Of a stretch of DNA of 64,000 nucleotides, positions 54,605-64,000 are shown piece after piece (the stretch's first letter is position 1; the number at the start of each line of letters is the position of its first letter). The stretch is from the NCBI GenBank assembly GCA_021613535.1, contig CP075496.1, positions 12,958,001 to 13,022,000 on the forward strand, given 5' to 3'. The stretch is from Adineta vaga (Eukaryota; Animalia; Rotifera). A program made the position numbers and the translations under genes. The notes beneath the pieces are model-generated. The model was not told the DNA's origin. It worked only from the letters and a program-made list of their open reading frames with translations, and did not search any database.

Positions 54605-55601
54605 TTACGCAAGTTTATCAAGTACAGTGCGTACTTCATTAAAAACATCATCCGGTGCTAATTCTGAATTAACCTACAAAGAGAAAATTGTTGATAATCA
54701 ATCATTTGAAATGAAATTTGTATGAAAAATACCTCAGCTAATTTGCCTTGATTTTTATAAAGATCTAAAACCGGTAATGTTTGATTATGAAAGGTTTGTA
54801 AACGATTTTTAATCGTTGTTTCATTATCATCAACACGACCAGATGTTTGACCACGATGTAATAATCTTTCGGTCATTGTATCGTCACCTGCTTTGACATA
54901 GAGAACAAGATTACATGGTGCAATCTTATTAAAGAGAAAATAAAAGAAATATTTTCGAATAGAAAAATGATTAGAAAAACGAACCACTTCTTCAAATTTT
55001 TGAGCTTGAGGAACTTCACGTGGATAACCATCGATAAGAAAACCTTTGGATTTCTCAGCATTTTTTATCATATTTTCCTTGAGTAAATCGAGAACAACTT
55101 CCTACAAATGTATATTTCATTAAGAATTCTATTTTTTGAAAAACAAAACTCGTTACCATTGGAACTAATTTGCCTTCTTTCATCAATGCATTGAGTTGTT
55201 CACCACGTTCAGTTTTTGATTGAACAGCTTCGCGAAGAAGGTCTCTAGAAAAAAGCGAACAATAAAAAAACGATTTCTTTCAATTTCTAATCATTTTCAT
55301 ACCCAGTGCTTAAATGCGTATAACCATATTTTTGAACAATTCGTTCACATTGTGTACCTTTTCCTGATCCTAATTAACGAAAATGATTTCTTCCTGAATA
55401 TATCAAAATAAATGTTACCTGGTCCACCGACGACAAAGATAATTTTCGAATCTTTTAATTTGTCTAATTCAGGTTTACGTTCGATAACTAAGAAAGAAAG
55501 AAAGAATCAAGAAATTGTTTTATCTTTCAATATAAAGGTTAAAATTCATATGTGAAAAGGATCATTTCAGAGAATTGAGTTATATTCTCACCTTGTGTCA
55601 T
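54605..55601 (-). CDS. AK1-like single-domain adenylate kinase (own first exon ATG ACA CAA G; isoform or separate gene)
   Basis: ATG 55601 followed by a GTGAG donor, splicing in frame to VIERKPELDKLKDSKIIFVVGGPG. Confidence 0.75.
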
Positions 55602-57770
55602 ATTTGTTGTGTATTGCTGACTATACTCTCGAAAATAACCCTTAACACAAGATGAGATGTCGAAGAAAAAGACGGCAAAGAAGAAGAAGAAGAAGAGAAA
55701 AGATTCGTAGAAAGTGTATTTGGCACCAACAAAAACAGAAGAGGGAGAAAGAAAGGAAGAAAAAGAAGACGATAGAAGTAGGTAATGGAAATGCGAAGAA
55801 AAAAAGTATGTTAGGCAACGATGCTTCCCAAATCATATAATATGCTATGGTAAACGAAGAAGAAACTATCGTAACAAGAAAATGTACAAACCCTTTCTTT
55901 GCTTACCCATTGAGAAATAACCTTTTAAGCATTGCCTTTATTGCTTTTGTTTCTCGACTTGTAGATGGGACAAAAAAACAACAGCATCGAATGTTAATGT
56001 CAGAGCGACTTACAGGATTTTATGGATAAATACACGACAAATATACATCTATCGATTAACGAAAGATTTGGTATTTTTTTCTATGGATGAAAGAAAAATA
56101 GTCTTATCGAAGGGAGAAATCTTCTATCATAATAATATCTTTATAAGTAGCTCTTTTTAGATAACCGCAGCGTGCTTTGAATATGTATATATATATATTC
56201 GTACCTTTATTCGATAAATCGTGATGATTATTTGTCTAAAAGAATGATAAAAAAAGAAAATATATTGACCAAAAATTCTTCTTGTTTACCCACTTGATGT
56301 TGTGCCAATAATTGACTTAATGCTTTCGATACATCAGTAAATATTTCATTTGCTTTTCGATTTGCATCAATTTTAACGAGTTTTCCTTGTTTATTATAAT
56401 AATCTAAAATTGGTGTTGTTTCTTCATGGAATGTATTTAAACGTTTGGTTATCGTTTCTCGATTATCATCAATTCGACCACTAGTTTCACCACGTTTGAC
56501 TAATCTTTCGATCATAACATCATCCGGAAGATCAAAATAAATAAACGTATCACATACACCAATATCCTTTTCAAATTGAATACCTATGAATAAATAAAAT
56601 ATCAAGATTGCTTTTTTTTGTTTGTTTTGAAAAAAGCATTAATCAAAAGATCGAAAAGTGAGCAATGAAGATCGAAGAAAAAGAATAGTGTTAAATGACT
56701 TACAAGAAATTCTTGAGTTACTGTAATAGAAAAGGAGTAGTTGAAGTTTATATGTGCACGAATGAATGAATGAATGAAGAGAAAAGAGAACGAAGATGAT
56801 TTAATGACATTATTTACCTTGATCAACTCGACGAGGAAATCCATCTATTAAGAATCCGGATGCTTGATCCGCTTTTTCATAAATTGCATCTTTAAGTAAA
56901 CCAAGAATATCTTCCTAAAATCAAATTAATCAATAATTTTCTTTCACAAGAATAGTTTTAATTGTATAATTACAGTAGAAATAAGTTTTCCTTGTGACAT
57001 AATTTCATTAAAATAACGACCTTTCTCTGATGTTGAATCTTTCACAGCTGCTCGAATTAAATCACCAGCTGATAAATGTGTAAACCCAAATTTCCCAATG
57101 ATTTGTTCACATTGTGTACCTTTTCCACTGCCTATATGAATGATTAAAAAATCAATTTCTATTTATCATACTTATTACCTGGTCCACCACCAACAAAAAT
57201 AATTGGTTTGCCTTTAAGTGAATGTTTATGTTGTAATTGTGATTGTGCTCTTTCTTGTTCATGTTTTCGTTGTTGTTCAGGCGTTGGCGATTGTGGTCGC
57301 TCTTCACTTTTTGGTTTTTCTTCTCGTTTACCAACAGGGATAGCATCGAGTTTGGGCAGTCGATTATGATCTGTTGGTAGATGAGAAGACAAAGATGTTT
57401 CGTTTGAATCTGTTGCGTTTTTGATACGTGTTAATGTATTGTTCATTCCACCTTTCCGTCCAATAAATTCATCCCATTTTAATTGTTGATTTCCGTCTTT
57501 ATACTACATAAAGATGAGGAAAAAAATTACTTTTATAAAGATAAAAAGAAGGAAACTTACTCGTTCTAACGAATTAATAATGAACTCAATATGATCATCT
57601 GGTTTATGAACCATCAAACCCGTAACTAGAGCCTAAAGCAATATTGATCCAATAGAACTTATTGATTGTTTTTGAAAAAACTAATTTACTTCAAATAATT
57701 GCGGTATTTTTCGTTTCGAAATATAATCTTTTGCTAATTCAGTATTCGTATTTCCATGTGTACGTGTCAT
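54605..57770 (-). CDS. AK5-like adenylate kinase: N-terminal D/D docking domain + two intact AK domains
   Basis: D/D: AKDYISKRKIPQLFE-ALVTGLMVHKPDDHIEF..KWDEFI. Both AK domains have GGPGSGKGTQC, IDG[F/Y]PR and RG[E/Q]TSGR.DDN. The phase-1 donor at 56289 is compatible with the acceptor near 55489. Confidence 0.85.
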
Positions 57771-58296
57771 TTGTGAAAGAACTTAGTTGACTTAACTAAC
57801 AAAATGAGAAGAAAAAAAAAGAGAGAGGAAGAGAAATCTAGAAATAAGACAACAATAAGCTCGAAACTGTGTTTCTTTTTGCACTGACTCAGATTTTCTT
57901 TTCTTCCATAAACAACGTAGTACGACGAATAAATGAACATTTCCCTCTTTGCTGTTCTCTGCACATTACTAATGTAAAGAGAACGGAAAATATATAAAAA
58001 AAAAGAAGGCTGACAGAAAAAAGAAAAATGCTTTTGATCACCAACATAACTCTTGCTTCATTGGTTGACTTATAGACATTTTTTTTTCACACACGCACAC
58101 AAAAAATAAATAAGAACATACTAGGGATGAGAGGGAAAAGCACAACAGAATGAAAGCAAGAGAGAAGGAAAGAAGTCTGACCCGCTATATTGCACATGAG
58201 ACATTACGAGAAGACTAGATGTAAATAAATCAAAAATAAAAGCGACAAACTAATGCTTTAAATATAAAATATAGATGATTGTAATTGCTTAATTTT

Positions 58297-60127
58297 TCAA
58301 ATACATTTGAGAATATCATTCTTGAGATCTTCATAGATTTCATCGACTTCAACTCGACCATCAACCTGTAAATAAATGAATATAGAATTTGTTTTTCTTA
58401 TAAAACATTGATTGAACTTACATAAATAGCTTTATTTTCTTCTTTGAATTTTTCTACGATTGCATTAAATTCTTCCGCATTGGTTTCTGGTTGTTGTTCG
58501 CCAATATAAATCAATGCAGAACAAGGACCAATCTTTTGTTAGTAAAAAAGATTTGAAAATTAGTTTTTACAACTAAAAAATTTAATTCAATTCGTTTTAC
58601 TTCAGTTTGAAATTTTCGAAGATCATTCGATGATGTTGGAAAACCATCAATAACATAGCCTGTGCATGTACTCATAGATTCAGTTATAGCTGTTTTTAAC
58701 TGATCAAAACGAAGAAATAATTTCTTAAAATCCATATAATGAATTGGTTTATAAGAAAAATCTTCAGCGATTCGTTCTGCTAATGCATAAATAAATGAAT
58801 TGCTAATTTCTTCTTCATTTTCATCTTCAATGTTTTCAAATTCCACATCTAATGATCGTCGTTGACCAATTTTTGGACGATTCAATTCTTTCACTGGTAA
58901 TTGATAATTGTCAATACAAAAGATAATCGGTAGATTAAAATTATTATTTGTCAATTGCGATACTTCAGATGGTTTTGTAGTAGATGTAGAAATATTCGTT
59001 ACATTTAAAGGAAAGATTTCATCTGCAGCACGAATGGCATCTTTAAGTATAAGATCAAAATCATTATTTGAATTAATCTAAAGAAATCTCATTATGATTA
59101 GTATAATTTATTGAATGAAATTACTTGAATTAGATTAAAATTTCGATTAGATGCATTTAATCGATCAGTTGATAGAACAATGGTTAGATCCATACGTCCG
59201 AGCTAGAGATAATTTCATATTTGAGTAAGAGACAAGATTACATCATATTTCTTCTTACTTTTTCTTGCCATTTTTTATAAAAATATCTTTCATTCACATG
59301 ACCAGCAATGATGAAACCTCGAGATTTAGGATAATATTGTTCAATGGCATTTTGAATACAACTATAACGATGTTCTTGTTTGTGAAGATCTAAATATAAT
59401 TAAATAAAGTGACTTTTTTTTCTTTTTTTGTTGGAAATATTTATTTTACCTAGACGATCATCGTAATCAATATTAGCAATATCTTCAATTGATAAGAAAG
59501 TCAATTGATTGTATCTTTCGATTAGTCGTGCACATAGTTTTGTTGCACTTGATGAGCCTAAACGAACAATAGTGAACGTTTACTTTCTCTCTTTGGATAA
59601 GAATATATTTACTGAGAAGAAACATGATAGGTAAAGTTTGCGATGGAGGTCGTTTGCTATTGTCAATTGGTGGTAATGTTGGTGCTTTCACAGCAGTTTT
59701 TCGATCTAATGATTGACTTGTTTTAGATGTTGAATTTGTTGGACGAACAGGTGGTAACATTTTTTGTCGACCTCGAAGAACAGACGGTCTCGATGGTAAG
59801 GCACCTTTGGTATTTGATAGAAATAAATCCGAACGAACACGATTTGGATTATTTTGCACCTAGAAAAAAACATAAATAAAGTTTTTCATTCGAGAAGAAA
59901 ACGAATGCAAATCTAACCTTATCTAAACATTCACGAATGAAAGCAATATGATCATCTGGTTTGTTAACCATAAGTGCAGTCATAATAGACTAGAATACAA
60001 AACAGAATTATAAAAGAAGAAAAAATGTCATTAATTCGTCTACTTCAAATAATTCATCGATTCCTTTTTTATTGATATAATTAACGGCACTTTGATTGTT
60101 ATGGATTGCATTCGATTTTGATGCCAT
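58297..60127 (-). CDS. AK5-like pseudoenzyme: D/D domain + two degenerate AK folds
   Basis: D/D: AVNYINKKGIDELFE-SIMTALMVNKPDDHIAF. P-loop position reads IMFLLSSSSATKLC; SRGFIIAGHVN and GYVIDGFPT replace GFLIDGYPR; no LID. Reading frame intact across the exons. Confidence 0.75.
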
Positions 60128-60269
60128 GATATTTCACTTAAACAAATAATTCTAATTAAAGGCTTTAATTTGTTTTTCTTAAATCTAAAAAAGAATGAAA
60201 TACAAAACACACGTCTATTATTTTCACGATGATTTTCATTTCATTTTCGTCAATTAGTTATCACACGTG

Positions 60270-60604
60270 TTAATTCTTTTTTCTATCATGCATTTCAATA
60301 AAAGTATCCCATCGAACTGGTAATTTCTGTTTTTTCATCTAAATAAAAATGAACAAATTACTTTTCTTTTTACGAATATTTCACAAAACAAACTTCAGTT
60401 AAACTTTCAATAATAAAATCTACATGATCATCTGGTTCATTATTCATTATACCAGCCATTAATGCCTACAAAATATCTTTGATTTTCTTCGTTCAATTTT
60501 TAAAATATTCTTACTTCGAATAGAGCTGGAATCTTTCGTTCTGAAATATACAATTTCTTTCGTTCACTAACAGGATCTTCACTTGCTTTCAATGATGATG
60601 TCAT
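60270..60604 (-). CDS. Stand-alone AK5-type D/D-domain microprotein, 76 aa, 3 exons
   Basis: MTSSLKASEDPVSERKKLYISERKIPALFE|ALMAGIMNNEPDDHVDFIIESLTE|MKKQKLPVRWDTFIEMHDRKKN*. Two phase-0 GT..AG introns at the same positions as in the two neighbouring genes. Confidence 0.8.
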
Positions 60605-60813
60605 CTGAAAAATAAGATTGAAAAGAAAAAGTTAATAAAGAAAGTCTTCATGTGATCACTATATCTCCTCAACGAATAAAACAACATTATCATTAAACTT
60701 TACAATTAACCTAAAAGTAAGGTATGCTTTTTTGTTTTTATATGGATATACAATCACTGGAAAGGAAGACATACATGAAGGATAATAATACGAAAAAAAA
60801 ATAATAAAGTTCG

Positions 60814-63800
60814 TTAAACACTGGTTGTTTCGTTTGGTTTTGTTAGAACAGATGCACCTTTGATCGGTGATGAGATCGCTGTTTGTTGAAGTTGAAGATT
60901 TTCCAAAAGAAAATTTCGTTTTTTATTTCCTCGTCGACTAGCATATTCATCACTGTTTACTGATGGAAAACTAGAATGAGTTTTCGGTGGTTCATATTGT
61001 GGTAAAAGACCACGAACGGTATATTTCCATTGATTATCTTTTGCCTAAAAAAAATCGAAATGAATAATATTGAATATAAATTTAACAGTTATGAAAAAAA
61101 AAGTCGATCCTCTTAACCTTTCATGTCATGAAACAACACACGATGCACCGATTCGCTAACGCAGTTCTGTTTTCTCGGCCGTGCATAGTCAGTATTTTGT
61201 TGAACATCTGGAGAAGAAATCTTGTTATATGATGAATCATTTGAGATTCTATCTTCAATGATACACGATATGAAACGTTTTCATGTAATAGAATATTATC
61301 GTAAAACTCAGATTTCCTCTGGAAAAAATTTATATTTTTTGATATAATGTATTTGTTTGCACTTAAAATTCTAACATATGTTCGCTTTTTTTTCAACGTT
61401 ATCTTATGCTTTTTATTCTTTTTGGTACATAGTGCAATTGAACTAAACATAAATGTTGATAATTAAATCAAATCAAATCTCTGATGAAAAACTATCATTA
61501 TTATTATTACTAATACCTATTTTTTTGCGTACTTCTCAGAATATAAATAAGATGCTTTAGCCGAAGGAGACATGTCTTATTTTAAAGCAGATTATTTTAA
61601 ATTTATCCTCTTTTGTATGAAATATATTCCTTAATAATATTTTAATAAATGATGTATATATTGTTTTACATCATCAGATCAACTTTCTCTCTTAGTTCAG
61701 TGAGAAACTATTCAACATACATCAATAATTAACATTCCATTGAATGTTCGTCCATAAACAGTTGGACAGAATGATAATTTGAATAATGTTCCATTCACAC
61801 TTGCTGGTAATAATTCACCATTTTCAGGTGTTATATCAAACGATCGATCACTATTCGATGTCAAATATGCTTTAAATGGCATTGGTAAACTAATTGAAAA
61901 ATCAAATAAGATAAATTTGAAAACAAACATTTAAAACATACTCTGTTGAACTATATAAACGAAAACCAATCGTTGAAGTTTTATTTAAACCAACAGCTTC
62001 TATTATTATTTCATCATCCGGTGGCGCATCAAGTGTCACAAAACGAATGGGATATTTTAATTGACCACCACTTCCAAGTGTTAAAACAAGTACACAATCC
62101 ATTCTTTAGAAGAAAAAAAGATCAACTTAATTATCGAAATCAAGAGAAAAAAAACCTCTCGTTATTTACGTTAATAATTTAGTTGGTGTATAAACAATGT
62201 TAAATCGAATGATATTTGTTTTATCATTATCATGTTTAAGAAGTTGAATACCAACTGAATTTTGAATGAATGTCTGATTAGCATTGTTCTCATTAACAAT
62301 CGCATAATCTTCGATAGATTTTGCATTTTTCTTCACTAAAAATCATCGAAAAGAAAACTTTCTCTTGTCCAAAAATCATATTCATTTGAATTATTTACTA
62401 TTATTTAAATATCGTTCATCAAAACGAAATAGATCTTGATTTAATTCAAATTCAATTTGTTCTTCAATACGTTCACCAGAAATACATTCAAGAATTTTCA
62501 ATTGATTATTATTCTCTCCTCGTTGAGATATCCAACTGAATGCAATACCTTGTAATGGATATGTCCATGAAAGTTCTGAAGCATCAGCACTTTAAATAAG
62601 AATGAAAAAAAACGTCCAAATTAGAAAGTTTTCTCAAGAAAATATGACATGAATTTTACTTGTCAGGTGACCATGTTTTGCCGGGTGATAATCGTCCAAT
62701 AATACGTAGTTGCGCTTCGTGTCGTGCTAAGATTTCTGGACAGAAAGCAATTGGAATTGCAAATCGTTCTCGTGGTCCCAATGTAATATTATCAAGTTTA
62801 TCAAGTACCACACGAAATGAATTACTTGTTCCTATAAGAATAATTTCATTCTAACGAATCAATCAACAAAGATTTTATCTCACCAGAGGAAAGTGATAAA
62901 TCACATCGAATTGTATGATTTGATGGATTTTGAAAACCAATATTCGTTGTTGCACTTACTCCAATTTCGGTTTTGATGATAATAGGTGCTTGAAGTTTTT
63001 GAGGTTTCGTACCTATACCTCGGACGTTATATGTCAATGTTCCAAGCTAAAATGATGACAGAATATTATTCTCAACGAAGAAATCCAAATGGATGAATCA
63101 GGAAGATTTTTAAATTAGCAAAGATAGATAATAAAGCAAGATGGAGCATGATGTTACTTTTTCAATACTCGAAAGAGATTTTTCAATGAATTGAATCTAA
63201 TGTATGTGGATTGAAAATGAATCGATTTTTCTTTTTCGTTTTTTTAACAAACCTTTTCGTTATTAAATGAAATTGTCGATTGATGTGGTTGTTGTTCAGT
63301 ACCACTACCAATTGAAGATGGATTAAAGATAATATTCACTTTTGTTTGACTTTTCCCTGGAATTGTTATTGTATCTTGATCTGTATTCATCGAAAAGTTA
63401 TTATTATTTGATGACATTGTTTGAAATATAATTTGTTCATCTAATGGATTTTCAAGTATTATTTCTTGGGTTGTATGACTTAAAATGAAACAAAAGCATT
63501 CAAACCAATGGAAAATGATCAATTTTTTTTTTAATAATTCTTACCCTCCAAGTGGTGCACTCATCGGTTGTAAATCAACTTTTCTTGGATTAGTACTTGT
63601 TAAACTCAATTCATACCAAAATTCACCAATTTCTTCATTGAAAAATACCAAACTAAACAACAGACATAGAGCTGGACTTTTTTTTTCAAAAGAAATACTA
63701 TTTCAAAAATGTTTTTTCTTTTTCATAGGCTATATAAATAAGAATAACTATCGTATCTAGTATGCTCGGTTAATCATTATCATGGATTGTCTTTCAAAGA

Positions 63801-64000
63801 GAAAAAAAATAAACTCATTCTACTGAAAAGAAATGTTCATTCCGCATATCTGAATGAGTAAAATCCATTAATAAATGGCGAATCTTTTCCAAGAATTTTC
63901 TATTCTTATAATGCTTACCCGCCATTCCATTGTCCAACAGTTTTAGGTTTATAAAATAGTTCATAACGAGCTTCACCATTTGCTTCAATTTCAATCGTTT
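60814..64000 (-). CDS. CFAP47: Cilia- and flagella-associated protein 47-like, 3' part (starts beyond the window)
   Basis: Repeated ASH/Ig-like exons; GELLPASVNGTLFKLSFCPTVYG, QWKYTVRGLLPQYEPP, C-terminal KRNFLLENLQLQQTAISSPIKGA. Confidence 0.85.

Follow-up and report, generated by a model that had tools for sequence, protein, structure and literature searches.

The closest described systems to the locus considered here, three tandem genes (G1, G2 and G3) of the bdelloid rotifer Adineta vaga, are adenylate kinases (AKs) anchored through dimerisation and docking (D/D) domains. In mammalian radial spokes the D/D domain of AK8 pairs with EFCAB10 and docks on RSPH3 (PMC11779644; PDB 9FQR), and the DPY30 domain of AK7 pairs with EFCAB5 or AK9 on CFAP91 (PMC11779644). 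Chlamydomonas FAP385, a protein of 70 amino acids in the radial-spoke neck, resembles the N-terminus of AK8 (PMC12399478). Axoneme structures have revealed this anchoring of adenylate kinases by D/D heterodimers only recently. The rotifer genes lie on the minus strand at positions 54605-60604 of the window, the 64,000-nucleotide stretch of DNA that was analysed, which belongs to chromosome-scale contig C4 of a 100.8-Mb assembly in six contigs.

Judged from their sequences, G1 encodes a D/D-only microprotein, G2 a D/D domain followed by two catalytically dead AK folds, and G3 a D/D domain followed by two AK domains with intact motifs. The three genes are transcribed, spliced and held by purifying selection, with G1 and G2 perhaps serving as non-catalytic D/D subunits of the kinase. 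A preliminary description of this DNA had suggested an undescribed module of enzyme, pseudoenzyme and microprotein. With AK8-EFCAB10, AK7-EFCAB5/AK9 (PMC11779644) and FAP385 (PMC12399478) preceding it, that idea is less new than the description supposed. What the locus would offer is a view of how duplication, truncation and catalytic death turned one gene into the parts of such an anchoring system, which then long stayed together, and so a natural experiment on the origin of docking partners and pseudoenzymes.

The array and its D/D module

The genes, their parts and their upstream neighbour are placed as follows.

60604 (ATG) to 60270 (end of stop codon), minus strand: G1, a D/D-only protein of 76 amino acids, 3 exons
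60604-60515, 60465-60394 and 60338-60270 (stop included), minus strand: exons of G1
about 60562-60327, minus strand: D/D helices of G1
60127-58297, minus strand: G2, 458 amino acids, 9 exons, D/D plus two AK folds predicted to be dead (I4U23_021312)
60094-59851, minus strand: D/D of G2
59850-59641, minus strand: linker of G2
59640-59012, minus strand: pseudo-AK 1 of G2
58951-58300, minus strand: pseudo-AK 2 of G2
57770-54605, minus strand: long form of G3, 551 amino acids, 13 exons, D/D + AK + AK (I4U23_021311)
57740-57495, minus strand: D/D of G3
57206-56230, minus strand: AK-1 of G3
55446-54608, minus strand: AK-2 of G3
60814-64000, minus strand: 3' part of CFAP47, stop codon 60816-60814, upstream of G1

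The models of G2 and G3 are identical to the public proteins I4U23_021312 (P0001) and I4U23_021311 (P0037), the donor of G3 intron 11 being set by an RNA joint (54924>54985). The preliminary description had placed all three genes exactly. It had also reported a shared D/D start with introns at identical places, and this is borne out. Exon 1 of each gene ends in ..LFE at phase 0, and exon 2 is in each case exactly 24 codons long, carries M...PDDH..FI..L and is followed by a second phase-0 intron. Both D/D introns stand at homologous places in G1, G2 and G3.

A D/D profile was built from G2 and G3 orthologues only and run against all 101 Mb of the genome, translated in six frames. It matched exon 2 of G1 (E 8e-8). 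Its other genome matches were only the ohnologous G2/G3 pair, described below, and one unlinked FBXL13-like gene. As the matches are limited to these, the resemblance of G1 to its neighbours is not chance. The unlinked gene (G000:C1:5229048-5229209; L023 1498-2952) has a D/D of the same type in one exon, followed by an F-box and leucine-rich repeats, and is probably the FBXL13 orthologue.

We read the shared module as an RI-type D/D domain (R1D2 group, RIIa clan), because profile and PDB matches, sub-threshold Pfam matches, Atlas clusters and a three-helix model all point that way; the D/D identity put forward in the preliminary description thus withstands a profile search. The ten best matches of the profile among PDB sequences are all D/D domains, with EFCAB10 at E 0.005, AK8 at 0.016, FAP385 at 0.019 and PKA RI alpha/beta at 0.02-0.4. 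In Pfam, the module reached the DUF5586 N-terminus at 1e-5, below cut-off, and Tex55 more weakly still. Dpy-30 (PF05186) fell below the curated threshold (E 0.088, 13 bits vs a cut-off of 22), RIIa (PF02197) gave no match to the module, and a scan of the separate D/D exon halves, which are too short as pieces, gave no matches. The nearest feature-based Atlas clusters are RIIa/DUF5586, taken as leads only. In a structure model of G2 the D/D is predicted to form helices H12-21, H23-37 and H42-55, at a pLDDT (predicted local confidence) of about 70-80, which amounts to a helix-turn-helix with an extra N-terminal helix. The RI-type group of Dahlin et al. 2021 includes AK5, AK8, EFCAB10, FBXL13 and TEX55 (PMC8339350). 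A word-index search with the D/D region returned bdelloid proteins only, and no named AK5 match from outside rotifers.

Kinase domains, conservation and origin

The two longer genes differ in what follows the D/D. The exons of G3 match Pfam ADK (PF00406) at E 1e-14 to 2e-5. Both of its AK domains keep the P-loop GxPGxGKGT, the arginine of the nucleoside monophosphate (NMP) site, the DGFPR arginine and the LID motif RGxxxGRxDD, and AK-2 matches porcine AK1 at E 2e-72. G3 therein looks as the preliminary description had it, a D/D with two AK domains whose catalytic motifs are all kept, in an AK5-like layout.

G2 gave no ADK match in Pfam at E<=10, whether exon by exon, as a whole protein or in the genome scan, yet both of its halves are predicted to keep the AK fold. 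Aligned with the AK domains of G3 by hhalign, the halves scored probabilities of 90.8% and 97.1%; they have lost the NMP and LID segments. Other residues stand in place of the P-loop in domain 1, and in domain 2 an acidic insert has displaced it. The Walker lysine is in place in 0/8 members of the G2 family, and the loss of motifs holds in all eight. In the structure model, residues 283-458 (domain 2) align with the whole AK1 chain over 140 residues (Z 15.3, root-mean-square deviation 3.1). Domain 1 folded alone reached a pLDDT of 83.6; its best Foldseek matches are human AK5 (2bwj) and AK1, at a TM score of 0.65-0.67 by model, and VIA-align gave it Z 10-12 to P-loop kinases in general. A phase-1 intron inside the P-loop codon is common to G2 and both G3 AK domains. 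These features suggest a dead double adenylate kinase, in keeping with the catalytic degeneracy noted earlier. The best whole-chain fold match of G2 is AK8; we considered G2 as a diverged AK8 orthologue and rejected this, since both its D/D and the places of its introns link it with G3. No D/D-bearing dead adenylate kinase was found described in the literature, an absence that is weak evidence. As a dead adenylate kinase maintained by selection, G2 would be a clear example.

The order CFAP47 > G1 > G2 > G3 is held in five bdelloid species including A. vaga, being annotated likewise in A. ricciae, A. steineri, Rotaria sp. Silwood1 and R. magnacalcarata. The preliminary description had put CFAP47 directly upstream on the same strand, and so it is. 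The upstream orthologous genes carry PF24529 CFAP47 and PF26579 Ig_CFAP47, and an open reading frame (ORF) of the upstream gene within the window matches a HYDIN/ASH Ig-like domain. The annotations of four species place orthologues of G1, 75-77 amino acids long, at the corresponding position. In 5-6 species the frames of both G1 and G2 are intact and their introns conserved.

Ratios of non-synonymous to synonymous change (dN/dS) were calculated by the Nei-Gojobori method for A. vaga against the other bdelloid species; dS is near saturation and the values are rough. They were 0.07-0.26 for G1, with one other species pair at 0.58 at low dS, 0.13-0.35 for G2, with its D/D part at 0.05-0.17, and 0.22 for G3 (against A. 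steineri only). Between G2 and a second haplotype or strain there are 10 synonymous and 6 non-synonymous codon differences. Judged by these ratios all three genes are under purifying selection, strongest on the D/D module, with no value near 1 and those of G1 and G2 far below it. A lack of transcripts from G1 and G2, or ratios near 1, would have told against the preliminary description; both genes are transcribed and their ratios are low.

The family seems confined to bdelloids, and its broader significance is limited accordingly. When 1.84 billion representative proteins were searched with a profile of the largest exon of G2, there were 16 matches; three of the weakest look like repeat proteins, and the named relatives found with full-length G2 are all bdelloid. 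A word-index search for G1-like small proteins, with the D/D part of G3 as query, found only intron-read-through ORF fragments of G3 orthologues; the annotated orthologues of G1 were reached only through synteny.

A. vaga has an ohnologous locus on contig C1 that carries G2' (431 residues, P0022) and G3' (566 residues). All eight introns of G2 are in place in G2', and dN/dS between the two is 0.45. Since G2' has been kept at the duplicated locus, the death of the kinase predates the bdelloid genome duplication. There is no G1 copy in the 4.6 kb upstream of G2', no further copy anywhere in the genome by the D/D profile scan, and no G1 in the B-type loci L021 and L015. The gene upstream of G2' is not CFAP47 (L009 1022-1549); one ORF there has a weak, sub-threshold match to the flagellar C1a-32 (CLAMP) family (E 0.003). 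The first AK domain of G3' may be impaired, as its P-loop reads GSGKRTQ, not GSGKGTQ, and its LID SGRDDD (L009 7275-7300).

The preliminary description had derived the three genes from local duplication. They are indeed paralogues, so that part stands; G1, though, goes back to the 5' end of G3 and not to a common three-way duplication. In a tree of D/D domains G1 groups with G3 (99/99) and G2 stands apart, with branches between the groups of about 1.1 changes per site. The third exon of G1 keeps the G3 motif L.WD.FI. Because of this grouping and this motif we take G1 for a truncated copy of the 5' end of G3, the counterpart of G3 exons 1-2 and the start of exon 3, with the size and composition of a microProtein. 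The family was born from an AK5-like gene with an RI-type D/D and two short-type AK domains. G2 is a full tandem duplicate that lost every catalytic element and kept the D/D and both kinase folds.

A B-type locus of A. steineri (L015 4130-10860) has the order G2B, G3B exons 1-2, G2B, G3B. The tandem duplication there puts a 5' fragment of G3 upstream of a G2 copy, an arrangement that may illustrate the origin of G1. G3B exons 1-2 and the second G2B copy of this locus are fused in the chimeric public protein P0005, and the downstream G3B is without the N-terminal half of AK-1.

Transcription and RNA processing

The RNA evidence consists of assembled contigs from three transcript-like runs of three studies (X1, X5 and X11), with a DNA run (X8) as control. 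GT..AG joints occur in the transcript-like contigs and none occurs in X8. Both introns of G1 are present as RNA joints in X1, X11 and X5 and absent from X8. The 15 joints listed, beyond which there are 9 more, also take in all introns of G3 after the second, 55487>56205 among them, and two G2 introns. G1, G2 and G3 are all transcribed and spliced as modelled. A candidate 18-nt micro-exon in a 234-nt intron of G3 was rejected, since the joint seen in RNA leaves out the full 234 nt. At window position 57238, within the low-complexity linker of G3, run X8 carries 27 extra bases in frame, an allelic or strain length variant.

The features on which the rest of this section depends are these.

60605-60606, minus strand: AG acceptor directly before the G1 ATG, the putative spliced-leader site of G1
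60184, minus strand: poly(A) site of G1, abutting the AG of the G2 spliced-leader acceptor (60186-60185)
57837-58296, minus strand: 3' untranslated region (UTR) of G2; contigs stop at 57860 (X1) or reach a masked pyrimidine run at 57837 (X5)
57888-57838, minus strand: candidate 51-nt GT..AG intron in the G2-G3 spacer, predicted by contig arithmetic
56205-56235, minus strand: 31-nt mini-exon of G3, joining AK-1 to AK-2 in frame (joints 56235>56294 and 55487>56205 in X1 and X11)
55488-56204, minus strand: 717-nt intron of the G3 long form, containing the alternative first exon
55601-55592, minus strand: start codon and ten-base first coding exon of the G3 short isoform, spliced to 55487 (joint 55487>55592 in X1)

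The A. vaga spacer between G1 and G2 is 142 nt long. An X5 contig has 17 untemplated A after 60184, which marks the poly(A) site of G1, and an X11 contig has at 60186 nine letters that equal the 3' end of the bdelloid spliced leader. The poly(A) site of G1 and the trans-splice acceptor of G2 thus coincide. The sequence that we took to be this leader occurs, followed by GT, 63 times in the genome against 0 for a reversed control, which confirms it. A transcript contig of another bdelloid (L019) starts with the 3' end of the leader joined directly to the ATG of G1 and continues with the spliced G1 frame, a 92-nt spacer, the spliced G2 frame of 455 residues, a 3' UTR and poly(A). The context ..ttttcag|ATG before G1 is kept in five species. 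From this conserved acceptor and the leader-ATG joint of the other bdelloid we place a probable spliced-leader site before G1 in A. vaga as well. In these assembled contigs G1 and G2 look co-transcribed and split by polyadenylation and spliced-leader trans-splicing at one site. According to a 2021 paper operons had not been reported in rotifers (PMC7986045), and the G1/G2 junction offers a compact, testable case for operon-type expression in bdelloids.

Between the stop codon of CFAP47 and the ATG of G1 (60605-60813) non-coding blocks are conserved from Adineta to Rotaria: ..ctttccagtga.., ..ttaggt.aattgtaaagtt.. and a palindromic tgatcaca. They may be processing signals or promoter elements. 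In the G2-G3 spacer, the candidate intron at 57888-57838 is based on X11 record 7, whose 220 letters equal 148 + 72, with GT/AG at the predicted ends. This contig runs from the last exon of G2 into exon 3 of G3, which suggests read-through or overlapping transcription. Behind a long pyrimidine run, 25 nt ahead of the G3 ATG, stands a candidate acceptor (57797-57796).

G3 also yields a short product. The acceptor at 55487 is common to two joints, one from 56205 in the long form and one from 55592 in an AK1-like form of 203 amino acids. Contigs over the AK-2 exons are far deeper than over AK-1 in all three transcript-like runs, and R. magnacalcarata has a separate 202-residue gene annotated at the position of the short form. 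The joint at 55592, the depth of contigs and the R. magnacalcarata gene together argue for a separate start of the short form within the 717-nt intron, where there is presumably an internal promoter. At window position 56181, in a TA-rich stretch of the same intron, contigs of all four runs break with unlike continuations, which may reflect a repeat or a haplotype difference. This short isoform, the operon-like co-transcription, the ohnologous locus without G1 and the origin of G1 from G3 are points beyond the preliminary description.

Possible functions and comparison with known systems

D/D domains act in pairs, as dimers gripping an amphipathic helix, which here would belong to an anchoring protein, and we therefore propose by analogy that G1 and G2 are non-catalytic D/D subunits acting with the kinase G3, a proposal that seems to us evenly poised between right and wrong. 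G1, G2 or both would pair through their D/D with G3 or with each other, or would occupy equivalent helices on the same scaffold. Any of these arrangements would determine how many active AK domains are held at a site, and where, most probably in cilia, and the untethered AK1-like short isoform would supply soluble enzyme.

Several points weigh against this proposal. The PDB matches of the D/D profile are each marginal in E-value, and the evidence of expression comes from assembled contigs rather than single molecules. The case for a ciliary function consists of conserved adjacency to CFAP47 and analogy, and mammalian AK5 is a cytosolic brain enzyme. The D/D domains have conserved residues of their own in each paralogue (MN.E in G1 vs MVHK in G2/G3 before the loop proline, and the stretch FIRECLDK in G2), which would be expected no less with separate partners than with cross-pairing. 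The ohnologous locus does without G1.

The last two points, with the long branches between the groups in the D/D tree, also favour the rival that survives best: G1, G2 and G3 may be independent, subfunctionalised paralogues, each homodimerising through its D/D and docking on its own anchor at a different site, with no cross-pairing and with linkage persisting only through the shared transcription unit. We regard this as possible and somewhat improbable. The specific residues that it would explain are conserved within each orthogroup. Against it, in the axonemal AK anchors whose structures are solved two different D/D proteins form a heterodimer (PMC11779644), and co-transcription of G1 and G2 suggests matched dosage.

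A more far-reaching form of our proposal is that CFAP47 > G1 > G2 (> G3) is a conserved operon resolved by spliced leaders, its products being stoichiometric subunits of one ciliary AK-anchoring complex with the microprotein and the pseudo-kinase as obligate D/D partners of the enzyme. This is unlikely as it stands; if true, the operon would be among the first documented in rotifers. Less likely again is the tuning of tethered AK activity that the preliminary description had suggested, in which G1 (and G2) would be competitive inhibitors of the microProtein type, titrating G3 off its anchor or poisoning the dimer so that their ratio to G3 sets the activity. A truncation of the 5' end of G3 to a single interaction domain is a classic microProtein origin, and contig depths differ between genes and runs, though depth cannot rank genes. 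The derivation of G1 and G2 from one precursor would limit independent regulation, however, and the known small D/D partners EFCAB10 and FAP385 are structural subunits, not inhibitors. That G1 and G2 are pseudogenes, decaying duplicates or annotation artefacts without function of their own, as the loss of all catalytic motifs in G2 and the failure of the word search to find G1 as a database protein might suggest, is scarcely credible and was rejected in view of spliced, polyadenylated and spliced-leader-capped RNA from both, dN/dS well below 1, frames and introns intact across species and, for G2, also in the ohnologue, and the haplotype comparison.

The proposal that G1 and G2 act as D/D subunits with G3 can be set beside several known systems. 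In SL1-type operons of C. elegans the upstream poly(A) site is adjacent to the downstream trans-splice site. The G1/G2 junction resembles these in that the G1 poly(A) site and the G2 leader acceptor fall together and that another bdelloid has a transcript contig with both ORFs; it differs in being known from contigs and one 9-letter loose end. Like pseudoenzyme scaffolds, G2 retains two kinase folds under constraint without the P-loop lysine and the NMP-site or LID arginines.

The long form of G3 has the domain layout of AK5: a D/D of the R1D2 group at the N-terminus is followed by a low-complexity linker and then by two AK domains of the short-LID type, their motifs intact. The likeness is one of layout and does not settle orthology. 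Unlike AK5, the rotifer gene also yields the AK1-like protein from an internal first exon; in vertebrates AK1 is encoded by a separate gene. FAP385 is a counterpart of G1: it too consists of a D/D alone, has about 70 residues and looks like the docking end of an adenylate kinase, and it ranks third among the PDB matches of the rotifer D/D profile. G1 differs from it in coming from an AK5-like, not an AK8-like, gene, in being linked to and co-transcribed with relatives and in being restricted to bdelloids as far as searches reach.

With AK8-EFCAB10 and AK7-EFCAB5/AK9 the rotifer system would share its principle: a multi-domain adenylate kinase bears a D/D, and the other D/D helix pair comes from a partner that is no kinase. 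The rotifer profile has EFCAB10 and AK8 as its two top PDB matches. Unlike those partners, the rotifer candidates are recent paralogues of the kinase itself, gathered with it in one array.

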